A stretch of DNA of 64,000 nt from Pavona decussata (lineage: Eukaryota), in the NCBI GenBank assembly GCA_977016875.1, contig CDRNST010000120.1, forward strand, positions 3,410,001 through 3,474,000. Direction: 5' to 3'. Both the position numbers and the translations under genes were made by a program. Of this stretch, positions 3,071 through 59,902 are shown piece by piece (the first letter of the stretch is position 1; each line of letters begins with the position of its first letter). The notes under the pieces are model-generated. The model was not told the DNA's origin, did not search any database, and saw only the letters and a list, made by a program, of their open reading frames with translations.

Positions 3071-3859
3071 GTATCAAAATGTGCATACAAATTAACAACA
3101 AGCAGACGATGCATTCTATCGTGAGGCATTGTTTAGCCATTGACTGGAAAAATCACGGTTTAGTCGCGTTTCAACAATGTATTTTGAACATGGGTTAACC
3201 GTTGTCTAGCAAGACAACGTCTAAACCGCGAATTAGACTTAAACAAGGGCTAACTTAGACGCCGTTTAAATAGCCGGCCCATAGTCTCGAACACTCAACA
3301 ACATTATTGTTAATCAACGTCTAGCTTGGAAAAAACGAAATTAACTTGATACTGACAAAGAAACGACTCACGTGCGCATACAAAAATTTAAAATTCACAC
3401 TCTAACGCATTACAAGGATAGCGATTAGCGAGTTAATTAACTTGTTAGCGAACGAAAATGCCACTACATGCGTTCAACTCATGAATGTAATTACTAAGAG
3501 AAAGCCTACTTGCTATTATCGACTGTCTGCTTACAACAGTCATAAATTGTCTCTAGTGCAGAGTGCATTGTGGGACAGGTTTCTACACGTGATGACGTAC
3601 GTTACACGGTTTGCGCGCCTTACACGTGCACAAAATCAGATTGCTATGAATTATATGCCTTCTAAGTACTTCCGGTAAAATCTTCCCTCCTCTTCCCGTT
3701 ATACGGGTGTCTACTTTTATCCTAAAACGTCACTTTTCATGACAGAAAATAAATATCACGCTTTCTTTAAATTGCAAATAGATAAAAATTGTTACAGTTC
3801 GAATCGTTTTTTTCTACTAATAGCGCGCGCAGTGCAAATTGAATAATTACGTTTGTCTA

Positions 3860-4003
3860 TTATGACGTAAGAAATCATCACTATAACAACTGAAACTTTT
3901 CTCGTTTCGCGGGAAGTTTTATTACGCCGTGAAGCCTGAAGAATTCTGTTAAACAAGTGAAGATTTGACATTTTCGTTAAGAAAAGCTAGCAGCCAATAC
4001 AAG
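3860..4003 (+). promoter_or_regulatory. Putative promoter and non-coding first exon of the coiled-coil gene
   Basis: TGACGTAA (CRE-like, 3863) and CTATAA (~3881), then a donor AAG|GTAAG at 4003/4004. All are retained in copy 2 (52846, 52987). An acceptor TTTCTCCTAG lies 4 nt before the ATG at 5095. Confidence 0.45.
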
Positions 4004-5094
4004 GTAAGTTACGTATTGATTTTTTTCTAAAACGAAAAGTAGCTTTCGAGGAATTGCAAACTTTTTCTCACCCTCCGTAAAGGCCCCGTCACAAAAATTA
4101 TAAGTTAGTCCTAGGGATCAAGCGGTTCGTTGGGAGAATATATATTTTCGGTCTATTTAGGAGGCCTAAATCACCTCAGAAACTGATTTGCACTCAAGGG
4201 ATAAAGATGGCGTTTGCTTTGATACTTTGCCACTTAATATCGTGGGTGACAAAAAAATTTGGCGCAAAATTTCAGCGTTAGTTTATAATTTCGCATGTGA
4301 AATTACACGGTTGCCATGGAAACGTTTTAAAAACTCACGATTGAAAACATAATTTGTTCGCCATGATATTTAACGCTCACCAAATAGTATACTCGTGAAA
4401 AAAGGATACAATTTCATTTGCGTTTTGTTAAAAATATGCTCGGGAAATTATTAGATTACTTCACAAAGCGCGCGTGAAATTGATTACCCCACAGTAACAC
4501 GTAAGTGACAAAGGAAATTTAATTCCTTTTGTTATAATTAACGAAAAGACGAGAAGTTTCATCAAGAGAGGAAAGGAAAAAACTGCGATACCGTCCAGAT
4601 ATCTCTCTTTTAAAAACTTTGAAACGATCCTGAAGAAAATACATGCCTCCGATAAAATCTCTGCAAGTTGCACGGATTCATGTCACACATTACAAGGCCA
4701 TTCAATTTGTCTTACGAAAACATGGCTGAAGTTGCGACGCGAAATCACGACTCTGCCCTTTAAACGTATTGTCAAACGTTTAATTAACAAATTAGAAAGG
4801 AAAATAGTTTTCTCGTCAAACTTGAAAAATGTCGCAGAAAGGCAAAAATGATTCAAATAAGAATTTATTGGCGGTGAATGGTAGCTAATGGTACACGTTA
4901 TTTAACCGTCCGTGCAACTTGAAATGTCAACAAGTATCGTTACCAACCTCTATCATAAAATTGCCTTACCGTCGTACTATTATAAGTTTAAGTTTCTTAT
5001 GCCACAAGGGTGCAGTAGAGAAATGATTTTGCAAATAATTATCCTTAATTTTTTACAAGAGAGACATTACAAACCGGGATTTTCTCCTAGGATC

Positions 5095-6927
5095 ATGGCT
5101 TCTAGCGAATTATTTTCATATACCCAAGAAGAGCTCATCAGAGTAATAGAGCATCAACATGGCGAAATTCAAAGCCTACTTAATGAAAGAGGCTGGCTGC
5201 ATGAAGACAGCAACATGCAGAGGAGCCAAGCACAAGAATGTTATGACAAAGTTCTGGAGTGGCAGGCGTATGGAAATGGCCTTAAAAAGGATCTTGAAAA
5301 TTTGAAAAAACGAGACGAACAATGGAAGGAGGCACTGACAAAAGCCGTGGACAAACTAAACACGGAAAGAGAAAACTTCACCAATCTTGAAAATTTATAT
5401 TCTTCTTTAAAAGAGAAAAACAAACAGCTAAAAGAAACTCTCGAGTCGGCATTCATCCTCGGGAGAGGCATGTATGAAGAATATTGTGCTTTGTACAATA
5501 ACTACACGTTTCTTCTCAATTATGCGTACTGGATTCAGGGCGGTTGCAATGAACAACTTGCAATTCGTCAAGGTCAAGAGGAGGGAAATCCTACGCCAGC
5601 CACCCCTACCGAAAAAGAATTTCTTCTTACCACGACCCTTCCTCCCGAAGGCTGGTCAGCCATCTCCCCCAACATGCCAACCATCCAATCCCGTCAGAGC
5701 CCGCTTTTCATCCGGATCAATTGCCCTTGGAATGTTGGAGCTAACGCCAATGACAAGGTTCCATACATGTCAGCCATTCAAGTTCCACGTGTGCTAGCTA
5801 TTGAAGCTCCATGCTCATCAGCGAATAACACTCCATGCGCATCTGATACTCAGACCCCATGCTTGACAGAAATTAAAGCACTATGCCTGCCAGAGATTGA
5901 AGCTACATGCCTTTTAAATGATAAAAGTCTCTGCGTGGCTGATGCTCAGCCAACCCCATGCTTGACAGAAATTAAAGCTCTTTGCCTGCAAGAGATTGAA
6001 GCGAGATGCCTTTCAAAGGATAAAAGTCTATGCGTGGCTGATAATCAAATGCTTTGCTTTTCCGAGGTGAAAGCTCCTTGTGAATCAGAGAGCCAGGCTT
6101 TACTCGTGCAAGATAATGAAGCTCTATGCGTGATTGCAAACATTGATACTGAGTCTGCAGGAAGTGCCCATCTGTCTATTAATGAATCGCTGACAGGAAA
6201 ATCAACAAGCAAGGTAAGTTGAAGAAATGATACGAGTATAATGATATTTCTGTCCGACCAACGCCGTGCTTTTTTATGTGTTAACATGTATAGTTGTCAA
6301 GTGGCACATATGGGGGACCCCGGTCCCCATCTTATTATCAAAGAAAATCACTCACAGATGGCTCGAAGCTCTTTTCGATCTCGTTAAAAGTTTTTCCCTC
6401 CGTTCCCGGGGCCTCCACTTCACAAAAACCTTGGGTCACGCTACTCATCACATTTATGGCCATCAAATTAAATGTTAATTTTTCCCAAAATAGTCTTTAG
6501 TAGCAATGGTACAATGTTTTGAAGATGAGCGACCGATTAACGACACAACTTCGACTTAAATATTAATAATTTTGAGTAAAAAGTCGCTGTGCCCTATGTG
6601 GTGGGGTGAATTCCAGTTAGAATACTTTGTTCATGGATTTGAGGACAAACCACAGCCTCGTCGAAATTGTGCTCAAAGGCTCCTATCTGTTTCTCCCACG
6701 AGGATGGATTCGATTCAATTTTCTGCTTCTCTAATATTATGATGTTCATTCTGTTATTGTTGTATATTGTTAGGATCCTATGTCAGTTAGCTTTTTCATT
6801 TTTTTTTCAGCCAAGAAGTCGTTTCCAAAGATTGAAAAGATGGGTGAAGAAACATTTCTTGTGTTGCTGCAGCAGCGCAGATAAAGAAAACAGATCTGAT
6901 GCTGTTCCCCCCTCCCCGCAAGAGTAA
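5095..6927 (+). CDS. Uncharacterised ~411-aa protein: coiled coil, Cys-periodic octapeptide repeats, basic helix + CCC C-terminus; exons 5095-6213 and 6811-6927
   Basis: Long ORF. Phase-0 donor AAG|GTAAGT at 6213 and acceptor TTTTCAG|CCA at 6811 give ...GKSTSK-PRSRFQRLKRWVKKHFLCCCSS...PQE*. Splice sites and terminal stop position are conserved in copy 2. Confidence 0.75.
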
Positions 6928-7472
6928 AAAAAAATTTTAAAAAAATTAAAAAAAAAAACATAAAAAGACAAAAATATTAAAAAAAGAAAAAAAAGAAAAA
7001 GAAAAAGAAAAACAGAATTCTTATCGCAACGGGTCTGACGATAAACCGAAACAAGCCAATTTCAGAATGGTGCGCAGATTGCTGTCGTATAAAAAGGTAA
7101 AAGTACTATTCTTTTATTTTCAGTTTCAACGCCTGTCTTAGCAGGTCTTTCGGACAATTTTGGGAGATTCAACGATCTCAAAATCATTATTCAAAACGTG
7201 TTTAGTTGGCTACGGTCATCCTGTATCCAATAAGTGAATTGTAATAATTGCTTTACTTAGTTTTGTTTCGTGTTTGAACACTTTCATGAGATTTGCGCAA
7301 TACAAATTGCATTATTGTTATTTGTTATTATTGATATATCTTCCAAGATAATAACTTATTTATGCTTGGAGGAGGGGGGAGTGGGGTTCTGTCTTAATTC
7401 TTTTATTGTCCTGAATCCATGCTCCAGAAATGACGTACTCCCATTCCAACTCAACGATTTTATTATGAACAG

Positions 7473-8231
7473 AGCGCTACTGCTTGAGGTTCAAAACACA
7501 AGTAAAGACGGAGACTGAGGGAACTCAATTCAATTCAATTCAATTTATTTGCCATTAACAAAAAAATACAACATAAATACATTATAGACGACACACAATG
7601 TTCTTACTATTACAATATTCATACTTGACTATTTACAATATTAAATGTGTTAAAGGCTAGGAAGCCTATATAGAAGCCGGGGGCTTATTAACTATAGGCT
7701 TCCTAGAACTATTGGATAAACCATAGAAGTTAAGGGTACTGATTGAAATTTCCAATTAAATTTTTTTTTTTTAAAAGAAGAAAAAAAAAAAAAAGGAAAG
7801 GAAGAAAAGAAAGAAAAGGTAAAGAAAAGGTGTGTAGCTCAACAAAGAGTCAATTTAACTTAGATAGAAGGAATTTTTTAAGTCTTTTGCCAAACAAACT
7901 GATAGTTTCACTGTTTTGAATTTCACGACTTAGCGAGTTGAAAAACGAAGGACCTTGAAACCGAATTGAGAATTTTCGAAGATTAGTTCGACAATAAGGT
8001 ATATAGAAAAGGTTGGAATTTCTTGTTTTATAAGAATGTATTTGACTTGCAAGAGTAAACATATCACGAAAATAATTTGGAAGTAAGCTTCTTTTAAAAA
8101 GATACATCACAGAGCAGGTGCTGCCTGGGCTTGTGTGGGAGCTGACAGAGCTACAAGCCACAAGTATCCTGAAAGGAGACTATGATATGAGGATAAAAGG
8201 ACAGGATTACTGCAAATCCAAAGAGAATCAG
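7473..8231 (+). pseudogene. HAUS3: Orphan HAUS3-like exon fragment, interrupted by a LINE
   Basis: 8109-8231 reads TEQVLPGLVWELTELQATSILKGDYDMRIKGQDYCKSKENQ followed by a GT donor, resembling HAUS3 [31 protein letters not shown] (from memory). No other HAUS3 exons recognised. Confidence 0.65.
7528..8106 (-). mobile_element. 5'-truncated LINE 3' end (CR1/L2-like), copy 1 only
   Basis: C-terminal ORF2-type peptide IHSYKTRNSNLFYIPYCRTNLRKFSIRFQGPSFFNSL, with an AATAAA/(TTGAA)n tail at ~7528-7550. Absent from the matching site (~56555) in copy 2. Confidence 0.85.
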
Positions 8232-8913
8232 GTTAGTTTCACACACAATTTTAGAAGACTGTAGAGTGCCTGAGGATTTGAAACAAGGGACTACGATGAA
8301 ACAGAAAGCTAGAGGGACCTCAAAGTCGGGATTTCCCCATATTGTTTTTCTATTTTCTCTGTTGGTGACGTACTTAAAACAAACCTTTAGCTTTCGAACT
8401 GTCTCAAATGACAGCTAACAGAAGCTGCTCTTCCGTTGGTGCTATAAATGCATTGTTTTCTATAATTGAAAAATTGACTGAGTTATCTTACAGTTTTCCG
8501 TTCAGTCCAATTTGGAAACAACTTAACAAATATTATGCACGTGTAACTGACTTCTTTGCCAGCACTCATGTTTTTAAATACGTGAAAGAATAAAAAATGT
8601 CGAGCTGTGAACACATGTACCTCTTGTGTACCTATTTTTACCCTTCATTCTATTCGTCCCCAGGTCCTTTTCTTAGATAACTTAAAGATGATGGACAGGG
8701 AACTGTTTACGTATTCCTCCAGGGATCCTTCTCGTCTAAAGAGAGCTATCATTGAATAGATTGTCTGTGCAAGTTGACGCACAGAAAATTTCGTTGAAAT
8801 GAAGAACGCATGTGCAATGCAGGTGAACTTCTCAACCGAGACACTGGTCGAGGGACGGCATCCTCTACTGCTCCCGTTAGGAATACATTGCGGGTAACGA
8901 TTTAAGGAAAATT

Positions 8914-9251
8914 CTACCGCGTGCGGGGAAACCGACGCGTCACCTTCTATGGCAGTGACGACAAATTAGCGAAGTCCATAGCTCGCTACCGCGTGCGGGG
9001 GAACCGACGAAGTTTCACTTTCCACATGAACAAACAATGGCGACGAATTGATTAGAAAGATGTATCCCAGAAACTAACTGGATTTATACTTTAAAGTGGG
9101 TTGTCCGGCTGAGAGTCTGACGCGTGCGGGGGAACCGACGAAGTTTCACTTTCCACATGAACAAAAAATGGCGACGAATTGATTAGAAAGATGTATCCCA
9201 GAAACTAACTGGATTTATACTTTAAAGTGGGTTGTACGGCTGAGAGTCTGA
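8914..9251 (+). repeat. Repeated motif CTACCGCGTGCGGGG(G/A)AACCGACG plus a 131-bp tandem duplication
   Basis: Motif at 8914, 8986 and (partial) 9121. Bases 8990-9120 are duplicated at 9121-9251. Two motif copies in copy 2 (57204, 57276). Confidence 0.9.
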
Positions 9252-10435
9252 ATAACTAAAGCTTTAGAGCACGGTATTGGATAAATCAATTTTACGCCGG
9301 GCCGTTTCCAATGCCTGTCTTCGATGGATTTTTAGTAAAGGAATGAAGAGTGCTCATATAGAACTATGCTTTTGAACGCTTAAAAGAGACGAGCACCTCT
9401 TTTCTTGAAAATTGTTACAGAAAATAGATTCCAGTGTATTGTGAAGGGTTTATTTCTTGGTTGCAACATTGCAAATGAATGCAAATTGACGCATGTGCAC
9501 AACATTTGTGCTCGTAGCGCACCAATGTTACCACAGGAAGCCCATGTTCTTAATGAGAAAAGATTTCACAGTTGAACTGATACCTTTACAAAGAAGAAGA
9601 ACCTTATATAACTTTCGTATCTTTAAATTTAATATCACTTTAACTCAACTAATTTTTTCGTTAATTCTTAATATGTTCAACGAGAAGCAGAAATATCTAG
9701 GACCCTCTTTCAGACAAATGTCCGTAAAAATTTCCGAAGGAGCGCTTACCTTGCTGTTAGAAGCCAATCTCTAAAGGAAGCCTTGTTGCGCTCTGGTTTA
9801 AAATTCATTTTCCGTCAAGTTCTGCGACTGCTTTTATAATTTGCAATAAACAATTTTTCAGGATCTTAAATTAGGGTGTCGCTTAATCTCAATCGTAATA
9901 TACAAAGCTAATGGAAGTTATAGCTCTTTCATAGAGCGATCCCTCTAAAAGCGTTTTTGAGTCCCCCACGACATTTAACTGTATAACTTAATCGTTGTGG
10001 CGGCAGCGCAAATGATGTCGCTGATAGAAGCCACAGGCGAATATTAGTTAACAATCGTAGCATTTCATCCCGCGGGGAATGTAATTCAATTCAAAGAAAA
10101 CAAGGCAAAAATCAGTCCATCAACGCCATAACCAGCTTAGTTCCCAGGCGATTCAGGCGGGGTCCTTATATTAGGTCTAGGTTCTATGTTCGCGCGCTCA
10201 CGTCATTAAACCCACTTTAGAGTCCACTACTTGATACGAAACTCGACTGTGAACTTTGGTTCCTCGGGTATCTCCTGTAAGGGAAACAAATAGTGTGATT
10301 CATGTCAAACCTTTCAAGAAGCTTTAAATGTTAAGCGTTGACGTGTACACTTGACGGACTTGAAAGCGCATTTTGTAGTCGTGTTCCTAGTGACCTGGCC
10401 TTTGAGTAAAAGCGAGGCTAGAGTTGCCCTTTTTG

Positions 10436-10720
10436 GGTGCGGTGTGATTGGTCAATTTTACGGGCCGAATTCCACTGTACGGCCCGCTAAACTTCAACTA
10501 TTTTCCTTTCCTGAGAACCCGATTAACCTCAGATATAATAAAAATAGAGAATAAATCTCTTACTTACCTCGTTTTCTCGGTCTCTACGGTAAGTTACGAA
10601 TCCTCGTTTTTTCCTTTTTTTTTCTTTTTCCTCGCTTTTACGAATCCATAAATCAACGGGATAAAACTCTGTCCGTAACTTTCAGGACGGACCTCCAGCT
10701 CGGTTAGTAAGAGGTATATA
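10436..10720. mobile_element. Interspersed repeat with internal inverted repeats, copy 1 only
   Basis: Homology to copy 2 breaks here. Contains CGGGCCG...CGGCCCG and GTAAGTTACG/CGTAACTTTC inverted pairs. Confidence 0.5.
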
Positions 10721-10848
10721 AAGAAGCTAAAAGAGCTGTTCTAATGCTAAATCGTCTCTTTTCATAACAAAAAATGAAAATCACGCATTCGATTCTTTTA
10801 ATTGCAAATAATTATTGTTATAACACTGAGTCCCATCGCAGTGAAACG

Positions 10849-11133
10849 TTAAAACCTCTTTCTCTTTGCAGCCGGCATCTGTTGTGCTGAGAGCTTTCTT
10901 TCAAGTTCGGCAACCTTGCCCTTCAGTGTGGCGATTTCCTTTTGTGCCTCAGCTTTGGCAAATTGGAGTTTCTGAACATAAGATAAACCGAAAACATGTT
11001 TTAAAATATTGCTACGGACCTTGGCTGGAAGAACAAGTTGACAATAAAGGACGATGTTTTGCAATCATGATTCGGCTCGTTTTAAGAAAACCGGCCCTTT
11101 AACCTTTGTTATAGCTAAAAGCAACGTATGATA

Positions 11134-11180
<47 letters not shown>

Positions 11181-52173: not shown

Positions 52174-54054
52174 TAACTTGCGTACTCTAAATACAACAAT
52201 TTTCGCACAAATTTTTCGCTATGAACACATGTCATCTGTCAGAACAAGAGATACAAAGATTCTTTATTCCGCCAATGGGCGGCCAGAACACAAATGCTCT
52301 TGACATTGACAGCGAAGGTAAAATTAAGTACAAAGAAAACGAAATTAACTTGATAACGGACAAACTACCCACGCGCGCATACAAAAATTTAAAACTCGTG
52401 CTCGCAAAAATCTTACGAGTTAATTTACTTGATAGCGAACGAACTACAATTACGTGCGTTCAACTCATGAATGTAAATACCAGCAGGTCCACTTGCTATT
52501 ATCGGCTGTCTGCTTACAACAGTCATAAATTGTCTCTAGGGCAGAGTGCATTATGGGACAGGTTTCTACACGTGATGACGTTACACGTTTTACGTACTAT
52601 CACGTGCACAAAATCAGATTGCTATGAATTCTATATCTTCAAATTACTAACGGTAAAATCTTCCGCTCCTCTTGCCGTCACACGGGTGTCTACATTTACC
52701 CTAAAACGTCACTTTTCATAACAGAAAATAAATATCACGCATACGACTCTTTCATTTTCAAATAATTAAAATTATTACAGTTCGAATCGTTTTCTACTAC
52801 TAATAGCGCGCGCAGTGTAAATTGAATAATTACGTTTGTCTATTATGACGTAAGAAATCATCACTATAACAACTGAAACTTTTCTCGTTTCGCGGTAAGT
52901 TTTATTACGCCGCAAAAGTTTGAAAAACTATTTTTCCACCGGTGAAGATTTGATATTTTTGTTAAGAAAAGCTAGCTGCAATACAAGGTAAGATACGTAT
53001 TGAACGTGTTCTAAAACAAAAAGTAGATTGCGAGAAATTGCACACTTTTTTCACCCTTCGTAAAGGCCCCGTCACAAAAATTATAAGTTAATCTTAGGGA
53101 TCAAGCGGTTCATGCCAGAGAATATATGTTTTCTGTCTAGTCAAAAGGGCTAAATCACCTCAGAAACCGATTTGCACTCAAGGTATAAAAATGGCGTTTG
53201 CTTTGATACTTTGCTACTAATTATCGTGGGTGACAAAAAAATTTGGCGCGAAATGTAATTTCCCGTGTGAAATTACACAATTGCTATGGCAAAGTTTTAA
53301 AAACTCACGATTGTGAACTTAATTTGCCCGTTATGATATTAAACGGTAACCAAACGGTAGATTCTTAAAATAAGGAAATAATTTCAGTTGCGTTATTTAT
53401 TTATTTATTTATTTATTTATTAGATTACTTGACAAAACGCGCCTGAAATTGGTTACCCATAGTAACACAAAAGTGACTTAGGAAATTCAATTCCTTTTGT
53501 TATAATTAACGAAAAGATGAAAAATTTCAAGAGAGGAAAGGAAAAACCTGCGTTACCGTCTAGATATGTCCCTTTTAAAAACTCGGAAACGATGCATGCA
53601 TCCAATAGTATCTCTGCAAGTTGCATGGATTCATGTCACACATTACAAGGCCATTCAATTTGTCTTACGAAAACATGACTGAAGTTGCGACACGATACGT
53701 AATAACGACTCTGTCCTTAAACGTATTGTCAAACGTTTAATTAACAAATAAGAAAGGGAACTAAAAGTTTTCTCCTGAAACTTGAAAAATGTTGCAGAAA
53801 GGCAAATATGATTCAAATAAGAATTTATTCGCGGTGAATGGCAGCTAATGTTACACGTTATTTAACCGTCCGTGCAACTTGAAATGTCAACAAGTATCGT
53901 TACCAACCTCTATCATAAAATTGCTTTAACGTCGTACTATTATAAGTTTAAGTTTCTTATGCCACAAGGGTGCAGTAGAGAAACGATTTTGTAAGTAATT
54001 ATCCTTAATTTTTTACAAGAGAGACATTACAAACCGGGATTTTCTCCTAGGACC

Positions 54055-55922
54055 ATGGCTTCTAGCGAAATATTTTCATATACTCAAGAAGAGCTCATCA
54101 GAGTAATAGAGCATCAACATGGCGAAATTCAAAGCCTACTTAATGAAAGAGGCTGGCTGCATGAAGACAGCAACATGCAGAGGAGCCAAGCACAAGAATG
54201 TTATGACAAACTTCTGGAGTGGCAGGCGTATGGAAACGGCCTTAAAAAGGATCTTGAAAATTTGAAAAAACGAGACGAACAATGGAAGGAGGCACTGACA
54301 AAAGCAGTGGACAAACTAAACACGGAAAGAGAAAACTTCACCAATCTTGAAAATTTATATTCTTCTTTAAAAGAGAAAAACAAACAGTTAAAAGAAACTC
54401 TCGAGTCGGCATTCATCCTCGGGAGAGGCATGTATGAAGAATATTGTGCTTTGTACAATAACTACACGTTTCTTCTCAATTATGCGTACTGGATTCAGGG
54501 CGGTTGCAATGAACCATTTGCAATTTGTCAAGGTCAAGGGGAGGGAAATCCTACGCAAGCCACCCCTGCAGAAAAACCATCTCCGCTTACCGCGACCCTC
54601 CCTCCCGAAGGCTGGTCAGCCATCTTCCCCAACATGCCAACCATCCAATCCCGTCAGAGCCCGCTTTTCATCCGGATCAATTGCCCTTGGGATGCGTTTG
54701 TTGGAGCTAACGCCAATCACAAGGTTCCATACATGTCAGCAATTCAAGTCCCACGTGTGTTAGCTATTAAAGCTCCATGCTCATCTGCGGATAACACTCC
54801 ATACGTGGCTCATACTCAGACCCCATTCTTGACAGAAATTAAAGCACTATGCCTGCCAGAGATTGAAGCTACATGCCTTTCAAAGGATAAAAGTCTCTGC
54901 GTGGCTGATGCTCAGCCAATCCCATGCTCGACAGAAGTTAAAGCACTTTGCCTGCCAGAGATTGAAGCTACATGCCTTTCAAAGGATAAACGTCTTTATA
55001 TGGCTGATAATCGAATGCTTTGCGTTTCCGAGGTGAAAGCTCCTTGTGAATCAGGGAACCAAGCTTAACTCGTGCAAGATAATGAAGCTCTATGCGTGAT
55101 TGAAAACATTGATACTGAGTCTGCAGGTAGTGCCCATCTGTCTATTAATGAATCGCTGACAGGAAAATCAACAAGCAAGGTAAGTTGAAGAAATGATACG
55201 AGTATAATAATATTTCTTTCCGACCATCGCCGTGCTTTTTTTATGTGTTAACATGTATAGTTGTCAAGGGGCACATATGGGGGACCGCGGTCCCCATCTC
55301 ATTATCAAAGAAAATCACTCACAGATGGTCAGAAGCTCTTTTGGATCTCGTTAAAAATTTTTCCCTTCGTTCCTAAGGCCTCCACTTCACAAAAACCTTG
55401 GGTTACACTACTCATCACATTTATGGCCATCGATTTAAATGTTAATTTTTTTCCCAAAATAGTCTTAAGTAGCAATGGTACAATGTTTTGAAGATAAGCG
55501 ACCTATTTACGACACAACTTTGACTTAAATATTAATAATTTTGAGTAAATAGTCGCTATGCCTTATATGGTGGGGTGAATTCCAGTTAGACTACTTTGTT
55601 CCTGGATTTGACGACGAACCACGGCCTCATCGAAATTGTGCTCAAAGGCTCCTATCTGTTTCTCCATGGAGGATGGATTCGATTCAATTTTCTGCTTCTC
55701 TAATATTATGATACTCTCTCTGTTATAATATTATGATACTCTCTCTGTTATATTGTATATTGTTAGGATCCTATGTCAGTTAGCTTTTTCTTTTATATTT
55801 TTCAGCCAAGAAGTCGTTTTCAAAGATTTAAAAGATGGGTCAAGAAACATTTATTTTGTTGCTGCAGCAGCGCGGATAAAGACAACAGTTCCGCTGCTGT
55901 TCCCCCCTCCCCCCAACACTAA
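54055..55922 (+). pseudogene. Paralog of the 5095-6927 gene (exons 54055-55179, 55806-55922) with a premature TAA at 55066-68
   Basis: Near-identical N-terminus. Copy-1 TTA(Leu) is TAA here. Downstream frame, splice sites and exon 2 (PRSRFQRFKRWVKKHLFCCCSS...PQH*) are still intact. Confidence 0.8.
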
Positions 55923-56492
55923 AAAAAAAATAAAATAAAAAAAAAATAAAAAAAACATAAAAAGAGAAAAATTTAAAAAAAAAAACATACCCTACATATA
56001 CAGACAAACAGAATTCTTATTGCAACGGGTCTGACGATGAACCGAAGGAAGCCAATTTCAGAATGGTGACAAATTGCTGTCTTACAAGAAGGTAAAGTAT
56101 AATTTTTTTATTTTCATTTCCAATGCCTGTCTTAGCAGGTTTTTCGTACAATTTTGGGAGATTCAACGATCTCATAATTAATATTCATAACGTGTTGAGT
56201 TGGCTACGGTCATCCTGTATCCAATAAGTGCAACTGTAATAATTGCTTTACTTAGGTTTGTCTCGTTTAGCATTTTTATCTATTAGTATTATGCGTGTTT
56301 GAACAGTTTCATGAGATTTGCGCAATACAAATTGCATTATTATTATTTGTTATTATTGATATATCTTCCAAGATAAAAACTGACTTATGCTTGAAGTGGG
56401 TTGAGCGAGGGGGGTTCGGGCTTAATTGTCCTGGAGCCATGCCTCAGAAATGACGTACTCTCATTCCAGCTCAACGATTTTCTTATGAACAG

Positions 56493-56676
56493 TGCTCTAC
56501 TGCTTAAGTTTCAAAAGGCCCTTTCACAAGTAAAGATGGAGACTGGGGGAACTCACAGAGTAGGTGCTGCCTGGGCTTTGTGGGAGCTGGGAGAGCTACA
56601 AGCCACAAGTATCCTGAAAGGAGACTATGATATGAAGATAAAAGGACAGGATTACTTCACATCCAAAGAGAATCAG
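56493..56676 (+). pseudogene. HAUS3: Orphan HAUS3-like exon, copy 2
   Basis: ELGELQATSILKGDYDMKIKGQDYFTSKENQ followed by a GT donor. Frameshifts and a stop upstream in the exon. Confidence 0.65.
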
Positions 56677-58949
56677 GTTAGTTTTACACACAATTTTAGA
56701 AGACTGTAGAGTGCATGTGGATTTGAAATAAGGGATTACCATGAAAGAAATCGAGTTCATGGTCAGAAAGCTAGAGGGACCTTAAACTCGGGATTTCTCC
56801 ATATTGTTTTTCTATTTTCTCTGTTGGTGACGTACTTAAAACAAACCTTTAGCTTTCGAACTGTCTCAAATGAGAGCTAACAGAAGTTGCACTTCCGTTG
56901 GTGCTATAAATGCATTGTTTTCTAAAGTTGAAAAATTGACTGAATTGTCTAACAATTTTTTCACTCAGTCCAAATTGGAACAACTTAACAAATATTATGC
57001 ACGTGTAACTGTCTTCTTTTTCAGCACTCATGTTTTTAAATACGTAAAAGAATAAAAAATCCCGAGCTGTGAACACATGTACCTCTTGTGTACCTATTTT
57101 TACCCTTCATTCTATTCGTCCCCAGGTCCTTCTCCGAGATAACTTAATGATGGTGAACAGGGAACTGTTTACGTATTTCTTGAGGGGAAACCGATGCCTC
57201 TTGCTACCGCGTGCGGGGGAACCGACGCGTCACCTTCTATGGCAGTGACGACAAATTAGCGAAGTCCATAGCTCGCTACTGCGTGCGGGGGAACCGACGA
57301 AGTTTCACTTTCCATATCAAAAAAACAATGGCGGCGAATTGATTAGAAATATGCATCTCAGCAACTAGCTGGACTATACTTCATAACGGCATGTTCGGCT
57401 CAGAGTCGGATGAATTAAAGCTTTAGAGCACGGTATTGGATAAATCAATTTTACGCCGGGCCGTTTCCAACTCCTTGGATTTTTAGTAAAGGAATGAAGA
57501 GTGCTCATATAGAACTATTCTTTTGAACTTTTTCAGTCGCCACTTTAAGGAAACCTTAAAAAAGACGAGCACCTCTTTTCTTTTCTTGAAAATTGTTACA
57601 GAAAATATATTCCAATGTATTGTGTAGGGTTTATTTCTTGGGTGCAACATTGCTAATAAATGCAAATTGACGCATTCGCACAAAATTTGTGCTCTTAGCA
57701 CAGCAATCAGTTACCAAAGGAAGCCTATGTTCTTATTGAGAAAAGATTTTACAGTTGAATACCTTTACAAAGAAGAAGTTCTGCGACTACTCACATAATT
57801 TACAATAAACAGTTCTTTGACCTTAAATTGGGGTGTTGCTTACTCTCAATCATATACAAAGCTGATGGAAGTTATAACTTTTCCAGAGAACGTTCTCTCT
57901 TACAGCGTCTTAAAATCCACCATGACAATCAACTGTATAACTTAATTGCTGTGGCGGCAGCGCAGATGATGTCCCTGATAGAAGAGACGGACGAATAATT
58001 AGTTAACAATCGTAGCATTTTAGCCGCGGGGAATGTAATTCAATTCGTACAAAACCGGAAATAATCAGTCCATCAACGCCATAATCAGCTTAGTTTCCAG
58101 GTGGTTCAGGTGAGTCTTTATATTAGCAAACAATAAGCAAGGAACCGCACAACGAAAATGCTGCAGGTATACGCATGATCTGTAAAAGATCTAATCAGCT
58201 AAAAATATAAATGACTCAAATTTCTGGAAGGCTGATCGGACTGCGTAGAAAACTTTACACGACAGCGACATGACTTATATTACATGATTTATATTAGGCC
58301 TGGGTTCTATATTCGCGCGCGGTGACGTCATTTAACCAACTGAGAGTCTGCTACTTGATACGAAATTCGACTGCGAACTTCGGTTCCTCGGGTATCTTCC
58401 CTAAGGGAAACAAATAGTGTGATTCATGATAAACCTTTCAAAAAGCTTTCAATTTTAAGCGTTGACATGTAGACGTGACGGACTTGAAAGCGCATTTTGT
58501 AGACGTGTTCCTAGTGACCTGAACTTTGAGTGAAAGCAAAGCTAGAGTTGACTTTCTTTCAGTCCTAAACTAGTAAGCTAGCTAGCAGCAACGTCAAGGC
58601 TCATTCACTGGCGACATCTAATGACGTGGTTCTGACATAAACTATCTGTACTTATTCCTACACCACTGTAACTGAGAGGGTCTGGGTACAATTAACTACT
58701 TTAATCAAGTGTCCCGTACGTAACGTGTGTATCCGCTGTACACTAGATTGCTTTTTTAGACTTTTTAAAATCATTCACCGATAAATCATTGTTTTGCGTG
58801 ACATTATTAAACTATAAAGTAACTAAAAGAGATGTTCACGTTCTCAGTGAATGCTATGCGTTCTTTGCATGACAGAAAATGAACATCACGCATGCAACTC
58901 TTTCTATTGCATTGCAAATAATTATTGTTGTAACACTGAGTCCCATCGC

Positions 58950-59079
58950 AGTAAAAAAAAAACCTTTTTCTCTTTGAAGCCGGCATCTGTTGTGCTGAGA
59001 GCTTTCTTTCAAGTTCAGCAAACTTGCCCTTCAGTGTGGCAATTTCCTTTTGTGCCTCAGCTTTGGCAAATTGGAGTTT
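58950..59079 (-). pseudogene. CCDC152: Duplicated last exon of CCDC152-like, stop codon lost
   Basis: KLQFAKAEAQKEIATLKGKFAELERKLSAQQMPASKRKRF, then a T-run replaces the TAA. Confidence 0.8.
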
Positions 59080-59902
59080 CTGAACATAAGACAAACCGAA
59101 AACATGTTTTAAAATATTGCTGCGGACCTAGACTGGAAGAACAAGTTGACAATAGAGTACGATGTTTTGTTATCATGATTCGGTTCGTTTTAGGAAAACC
59201 GACCCTTTAACATTTGTTATAGCTAAAAGCAACGTGTGATAAAGAAAGAAAGCAACAGCCTTAATACATATCTCCCGAATGTTCCTATGCCTCATAAATT
59301 TTGCAAAATCAGGGGCCAATTTAACAAATCGTTTACACTTGTAACCTGACCAACAATCTGGGCCATACACGCGCATGCATGCTCTCCCTTGAGGAACCAA
59401 AAGTAAATAAGCGTCCCTGGTGGTAAATCGAATTACAGTGTCGTGCATACGTGCGGTGCTATCACCAGTATACCCAGACTGGTGATTACATTTTATGCCC
59501 ACTTCAAATGGTGGTGTTCTCTTCATTTTTTTCTCAAGGAAAAAGGAGACAAATCTTCTAACATTTCACAAACTGAGTGATTCTAACTTATTATTGCTTA
59601 TTCATTAAAATTACATCAGCGATTTGTCGGTTTTTGGAACCAACTATTTTTAACGTCCATAACATGTCCTTCACCACTTTTTAGACCTAGTTCACCACTC
59701 TTTGCCTCTACAAAAATTCTAACCTATTCAGGCTAAACACAAAAACTAACACAGTACTTGGAACTTAGGAAAAAAGAAATAAGCCGGCCGTTTCGGGGAC
59801 CATGCCATCGTTATATTGTAACCTGGTAATCAACAAGAGGCGGATCTGTATGTTTCACCATGACAAATTTTGGACCCCCGCTCCATTCCTGCGGTCAATT
59901 TA

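Follow-up and report, generated by a model that had tools for sequence, protein, structure and literature searches.

A fast-evolving coral gene family encoding a coiled coil, a variable cysteine-periodic repeat region and a basic, cysteine-containing last exon

Introduction

Paralemmin (PALM) and GAP-43 are soluble, cytoplasmic scaffolds that are anchored via palmitoylation of a basic end that contains cysteine, and syntaxin-11, syntaxin-19 and SNAREs of the SNAP-25 type are coiled coils that are held on membranes via a palmitoylated cysteine cluster and not by a transmembrane segment. S-acylation usually takes place at a cysteine that lies beside a hydrophobic, polybasic segment. The gene described here lies in a stretch of 64,000 nucleotides of the coral Pavona decussata (the window; assembly GCA_977016875.1, contig CDRNST010000120.1, positions 3,410,001 to 3,474,000 of the forward strand), which is AT-rich with 39% GC and contains no N. 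Its protein has a layout like that of paralemmin and GAP-43, in which a helical or coiled N-terminus is joined through a long disordered stretch to a basic end with cysteines, yet it has no sequence relationship to either of them and its acylation is only putative; the CaaX box and adjacent palmitoylatable cysteine of paralemmin are not found in it, and Paralemmin (PF03285) was not among the Pfam matches at E <= 1. In the same way Pfam revealed no SNARE or syntaxin domain in the window protein, and its cysteine cluster is separated from the coiled coil by more than 220 disordered residues, unlike that of syntaxin-11, syntaxin-19 or the SNAP-25-type SNAREs.

A third system for comparison is the SPRR/cornifin proteins, which share with the window protein a series of 8-residue tandem repeats containing proline and cysteine, but which differ from it at their termini and lack a coiled coil and a lipid tail. 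The match to Cornifin/SPRR (PF02389) reaches 15.8 bits (E 0.017), below the gathering cut-off of 34.8 bits, and as judged from the sequences the likeness is one of period and composition only, as is seen in unrelated proteins of period 8.

Corals have many lineage-restricted, tandemly expanded genes of obscure role, and the genes described here are one example: by its sequences this is a fast-evolving coral gene family without a curated name, probably transcribed, amplified to about twenty intact-looking copies and with an architecture simple enough to be testable.

Gene model and transcript contigs

The gene is encoded on the forward strand in three exons. Exon 1 (3900..4003, the start being approximate) is 5' untranslated sequence that is followed by the donor AAG/GTAAGT after position 4003, and a contig of sequencing run X1 covers 3850-3980. 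Intron 1 (4004..5090, GT..AG) is placed by a joint in the run contigs together with the sequence itself. Exon 2 (5091..6213) starts translation from an ATG at 5095 that has a good Kozak context, encodes 373 codons and ends in AAG/GTAAGT in phase 0, this K/GT donor at the end of exon 2 being common to all homologues. Since exon 1 contains a TAA in frame at 3978-3980 and no later ATG, the ATG at 5095 is the first possible start. Intron 2 (6214..6810, GT..AG), the joint of which is seen in a contig of run X3, finishes with a polypyrimidine tract and then CAG, leading in phase 0 into the last exon (6811..6927), where 38 codons and a TAA encode a polybasic helix, CCC and an acidic, proline-containing tail. 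The exons, the donors and the last exon with its CCC had been proposed in a sequence-only reading of this DNA and are all confirmed in the sequence.

Parts of the window are present in coral metatranscriptome runs, and Logan contigs from four runs, belonging to four studies, were compared with positions 3850-7050. Both of the junctions that had been predicted were found in run contigs, with the RNA label of the runs in question (X1 and X3, from two studies) being a guess and contigs of the same runs covering the introns too. The joint 4001>5089, which is equivalent to 4003>5091 with GT..AG, occurs in two contigs of X1, and a single X3 contig has the joint 6211>6809, which corresponds to 6213>6811, the flanks of the joints being short at 21-28 nt per side. 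Furthermore, loose ends of X1 contigs at 6213 and 6809 bear the first or last letters of the opposite exon. Contigs without 99 or 123 nt of the repeat array match shorter paralogues of the gene. Run X7 is definitely a metatranscriptome; its contigs cover exon 2 in parts and no joint was seen in them. The gene in the window is real and spliced, and it is probably transcribed.

Approximately 40 nt upstream of the untranslated exon, at 3859..3871 on the forward strand, is a promoter-proximal 13-mer containing the CRE/ATF-like TGACGTAA. It is identical in the second copy of the gene within the window (copy B, at ~52842) and at nine paralogue loci of the same genome. Loci L016, L017 and L018 of other assemblies share the exact 13-mer too, though protein identity there is no more than 46-72%. 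The motif is likely to be a core promoter element or a bZIP site.

Coiled coil and linker

The presence of an N-terminal coiled coil of ~150 residues had been suggested from the sequence and is borne out by structure prediction and by hydrophobic periodicity. AlphaFold2 (AF2), run on the exon 2 protein with a 15-sequence alignment, predicts a single helix from residue 11 to 147 (5125..5535, forward strand) with a pLDDT of >90. The hydrophobic power at a period of 3.5 residues is 3.77, compared with a mean of 0.24 for shuffled sequences, and was reached by 0 of 5000 shuffles; such a sharp 3.5-residue period marks the region as a canonical heptad coiled coil, and it is also the region to which profile matches at 20-30% identity align. 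Within the N-terminal domain of ~150 residues W34, W56, Y59, L116, G123, E129 and L140 are conserved (alignment A3).

Downstream of the coiled coil is a linker motif, LPPEGWS ... FIRIxCPW ... SAIQ, at residues ~181-235 (5635..5799, forward strand) that is nearly invariant in alignment A1, and a weaker counterpart of it (PPE ... N[IV]F) is found in distant relatives and in Montipora. The whole of residues 149-370, the linker included, has a pLDDT of 25-40 in the AF2 model and is predicted to be disordered.

The cysteine-periodic repeats

The octapeptide array occupies residues 238-350 (5806..6144, forward strand), and the octapeptides with periodic cysteine that had been noted there prove to hold 13 cysteines in an 8-residue register. 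These are situated at residues 240-329 and at 345, with exactly eight residues between neighbours in 10 of the 12 gaps, a regularity that none of 100,000 shuffled versions of this region equals, and in each unit the cysteine is flanked by Glu and Asp. TRF detects a period of 24 nt in the array, and also a tandem duplication of 99 nt (period 99, 1.9 copies, 91% matches) at 5854..6042 on the forward strand, which upholds the higher-order duplication of ~33 residues that had been described and which corresponds to four units. One block of 99 or 123 nt is missing from paralogues and from run contigs.

Unit number and cysteine occupancy vary across paralogues and relatives. Most paralogues within this genome retain their register cysteines, all 8 to 13 of them; in related assemblies only 4-7 ladder cysteines are left, and the cysteines are replaced in relatives by Y, F, R or S. 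Among close paralogues the ladder cysteines are substituted about as often as neighbouring residues. The idea that the ladder might form a solenoid fares badly, given a pLDDT of 25-35 in the cysteine region, which AF2 predicts to be disordered, the variable number of units, the loss of cysteines in relatives and the presence of unrelated repeats in Montipora. From sequence and model together the ladder is a variable, lineage-specific insert, and a solenoid is not supported. Phage tail, TGF-beta, hydrogenase, SET and LRR proteins also match the profile in the repeats; on inspection these are unrelated proteins that have repeats of period 8. A metallothionein reading was dropped along with the solenoid in view of the disorder, the turnover of cysteines and the differing repeats of Montipora.

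The last exon

The tail encoded by the last exon of the window gene carries a net charge of +7 and consists of a basic stretch containing Trp, followed by CCC and an acidic and proline-containing end. This exon is conserved at 13 paralogue loci of the genome and at three loci of other assemblies; no paralogue lacks a last exon of this kind, and relatives with as little as 20-30% identity have it too, among them Montipora, where the C-termini of the RefSeq models use an equivalent last exon. When 16 tails are aligned K14 and C18 never vary, R7 and W11 reach at least 90% conservation, and a cysteine directly follows the basic stretch in all 16. Across the family the net charge of the tail ranges from +5 to +8 and the number of its cysteines from one to three, distant relatives having only one or two.

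A basic amphipathic helix with CCC had been described here, and most of this description holds: the tail is basic, it has its CCC and it is predicted to be helical at residues 2-25 (AF2, pLDDT about 80). The amphipathicity does not hold up, as the hydrophobic moment of 0.41-0.53 is not above that of composition shuffles (p 0.16-0.37). No CaaX box, transmembrane segment or signal peptide is present in the window protein sequence; the protein ends in ...PPSPQE, 18 residues beyond the CCC, and so has no C-terminal CaaX box. The suggestion that the tail serves as a lipid-bearing membrane anchor is strengthened by its conservation throughout the family, which would fit membrane binding and S-acylation and makes the tail the most telling part of the protein. 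Attachment of the protein to a membrane is the most likely role of the tail as predicted from its composition and conservation.

Relatives and family identity

A word-indexed search returned only ENA open reading frames of 46-100% identity, all from holobiont-type assemblies, with introns and flanks that are collinear with the window. Searched exhaustively with a profile, 1.84 billion representatives yielded 53 matches, which comprise one set that matches the N-terminal domain only, at 20-30% identity (distant members at E 1e-20 to 1e-8), and a second set that matches the repeat region only. A cluster look-up led to one distant branch that includes XP_068757753.1 from Montipora capricornis (743 aa) and XP_068713077.1 from M. 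foliosa (731 aa), both of which have been automatically named "FK506-binding protein 5-like". By BLASTP the Montipora model is 28% identical to the window protein over 202 aa (E 9e-19). A word search started from the N-terminal part of the Montipora model gave no match, the representatives of the clusters lying beyond its length filter. As Pfam finds no FKBP_C domain in either Montipora model (P0118 and P0127) or in the window protein this name is an artefact, and a misleading label on the only annotated relatives of the family can thereby be corrected.

The Montipora models have in common with the window gene the coiled coil, the PPE linker motif, the phase-0 donor that ends the main exon and, as the final exon, one for a basic helix with Trp and Cys. 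They differ in that the middle of the protein is a separate exon with about nine acidic repeats of 42 aa, whilst the window protein has cysteine octapeptides, and in that the tail has one cysteine after the helix where the window protein has CCC, and lacks the acidic/Pro extension. Because the repeats differ, the conserved parts of the family are the coiled coil and the tail of basic helix and cysteine. The last exon was predicted independently in the ENA locus L024, and the RefSeq models map exactly there; candidate downstream tail exons, rich in K/R and with a Trp and then a Cys, are also found in three other distant relatives. The unnamed coral family of this gene, the ENA/Logan open reading frames and the Montipora models is marked by an N-terminal coiled coil and by a short last exon, in phase 0, for a polybasic helix with Cys after it, and the window gene has both.

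That no family could be recognised had been stated at the outset, and this stands as far as curated resources are concerned, but uncharacterised RefSeq relatives with automatic names do exist. When both coding exons (each by itself), 21 N-terminal domains and the distant relatives were compared with Pfam only generic coiled-coil noise (tropomyosin, TMF and ZapB) was found, NCBIfam gave SMC/Rad50 coiled-coil noise only, and a profile search of PDB sequences gave nothing below E 0.1. The ESM Atlas feature search was uninformative, its scores of 0.87 falling on clusters without names and recognition staying under the threshold, and a literature search by accession and name found nothing relevant. 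Nor has Pfam any match in the window protein to transposase, reverse transcriptase, integrase or capsid domains, and the expectation that there would be no strong match to a known family or transposable element ORF held in Pfam, NCBIfam and PDB searches. A transposable element or viral ORF, or the cargo of an element, had been considered as a candidate and was dropped, the copies lying in local arrays with conserved introns and a conserved promoter motif.

Copies, arrays and mosaic history

The gene had been described as duplicated, and there is indeed a second copy in the window, but the description understated a family arranged in arrays, of which a genome of 602 Mb contains 36 or more loci and fragments. 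Self-BLAST delimits a duplicated module of 8.6 kb, made up of the gene and ~5 kb downstream, at 3332..11957, with its partner at 52336-59902 and ~87% nucleotide identity between the two. Exon 2 of copy B (54055..55179, forward strand) has 89% amino acid identity to that of the first copy (copy A), and its tail exon (55806..55922, forward strand) is intact with CCC kept. The duplicate is broken by a premature TAA at codon 338 (55066-55068).

Modules on the same strand form arrays on contigs C120 (8 copies, spaced 42-79 kb apart), C162 (5), C154 (2) and C87 (2), and decayed copies are found in small clusters on C18, C84, C104, C20 and C58 and singly on C273. The N-terminal domain is free of stops at ~21 loci and ~15 are decayed; in at least 8 of the 15 loci that were fetched exon 2 and the tail exon are both intact. 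The genome holds one subfamily only, within which there are long paralogues with two 33-aa blocks and short paralogues with one. Intron 1 of copy A is 96-97% identical to that of short-type loci and 90% identical to that of the long type, and the coding N-terminus, unlike this intron, groups with the long type, direct evidence of exchange between paralogues. These young arrays illustrate clearly how genes can evolve in concert and as mosaics, the family having undergone tandem amplification and, through recombination among its paralogues, reshuffling.

Selection

Purifying selection among homologues, the absence of which had been named as a reason to doubt the gene, is found for the N-terminal domain both in omega and in the bias towards codon position 3. 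For the N-terminal 235 codons the deeper pairs have a Nei-Gojobori omega of 0.22-0.46 (Fisher p 3e-9 to 3e-3), and in these pairs there are two to three times more differences at position 3 than at the first two codon positions. The N-terminal domain is under purifying selection. In the repeats omega is 0.5-1.4, recent paralogues have overall values of about 0.4-0.6, indicating weak constraint, and in the closest pairs all three codon positions differ about equally.

Copies A and B are 94.9% identical in exon 2 and 88.9% and 92.6% identical in their introns. When loci of other assemblies are compared, the N-terminal coding sequence falls a little short of intron 2 in conservation (86.0/90.0, 79.7/82.3 and 65.2/69.3), and between locus L001 and L017, L018 and L016 exon 2 diverges 2-4x as much at synonymous and third positions as intron 2 does. 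We tentatively ascribe this excess of synonymous divergence in exon 2 to gene conversion or a mosaic history.

Possible function and alternative explanations

Having neither a signal peptide nor a transmembrane segment the protein is expected to be cytoplasmic, and as a CaaX box is lacking too the most economical mechanism would be that of a cytoplasmic oligomeric scaffold. We lean, with a little more than even confidence, towards copy A being functional, as one gene of a lineage-restricted coral family whose product is a membrane-anchored coiled-coil scaffold with an S-acylated tail. Oligomerisation, membrane binding and acylation are what we infer for the protein: the coiled coil of ~137 residues would probably form a parallel dimer or higher oligomer, the polybasic tail with its Trp could first bind acidic membrane leaflets electrostatically, and S-palmitoylation of the cysteine cluster might then lock the attachment. 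The anchored coiled coil would so become a peripheral membrane scaffold with the repeat region lying along or near the membrane, where the ladder cysteines, which are outside the conserved core of the family, could add sites for acylation or redox chemistry. If the tail is a membrane anchor it would provide a compact natural targeting tag, and it would also mark a membrane compartment that is possibly specific to corals.

The tail could instead be a motif for protein interaction or targeting without any lipid anchor, such as a helix of the calmodulin-type 1-5-10 class or a nuclear or nucleolar signal, its cysteines being free or bound to metal. The conserved Trp and regular hydrophobic spacing within a strongly basic helix would suit such a motif, as would the reduction to one or two cysteines in distant relatives and the lack of significant amphipathicity, but a cysteine that remains invariant after the basic stretch in 16 of 16 tails is in the usual setting for S-acylation, and we think this reading unlikely. 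Attention may otherwise be turned to the ladder, which would be the working part of the protein if it made a cross-linkable or metal-binding matrix, in the manner of SPRR/cornifin or of octarepeats, that the coiled coil merely assembles. The retention of 8 to 13 register cysteines in most paralogues of the genome, the flanking Glu/Asp in each unit and the weak Cornifin match (E 0.017) speak for such a matrix. That match however falls well short of its cut-off (15.8 against 34.8 bits) and the further profile matches to the repeat region are to unrelated period-8 proteins, the cysteines are replaced as often as their neighbours and number only 4-7 in related assemblies, the Montipora repeat is a different one, AF2 finds no structure, and disulfides would be unusual in a cytoplasmic protein. 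A ladder with this role is distinctly unlikely.

It would seem very improbable that the array is largely non-functional, being a young segmental repeat in which frames are kept by youth and gene conversion and transcription is incidental, even though at least 15 loci, copy B among them, have stops or frameshifts, recent copies have an omega of about 0.4-0.6 with equal differences at the codon positions in the closest pairs, and the module is mosaic with transposable element fragments around it. Against this are the preservation of architecture, splice phase and tail exon as far as Montipora at 28% identity, the strong position-3 bias of deeper comparisons, the existence of spliced contigs and the presence of at least 8 full-length intact copies with intact tails. 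The preferred reading of a membrane-anchored scaffold might be extended to a new, coral-specific class of lipid-anchored coiled-coil scaffolds whose disordered repeats form a fast-evolving, multiply S-acylated or redox/metal-responsive "Cys zipper" on some specialised membrane, such as that of an organelle found only in cnidarians or only in symbiosis, and diversified by exchange within the arrays; this extension we regard as decidedly doubtful.

Sequences flanking the gene

Fragments of transposable elements are found around the module. At 7522-8107, 0.6 kb past the stop codon, is a dispersed element of ~585 bp with copies of 98-99% identity on at least 12 other contigs, and as copy B and related assemblies lack it at this position it is a young repeat insertion. 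At 1328-1960 there are ORF fragments that, by motifs recognised by eye, resemble a DDE transposase of the Harbinger/PIF type. Finally, the ~5 kb downstream of the gene (8107-11957 and 56553-59902) is co-duplicated in every unit of the array, and this co-duplicated DNA contains short ORFs on the minus strand, including a coiled-coil-like piece at 10849-11064.
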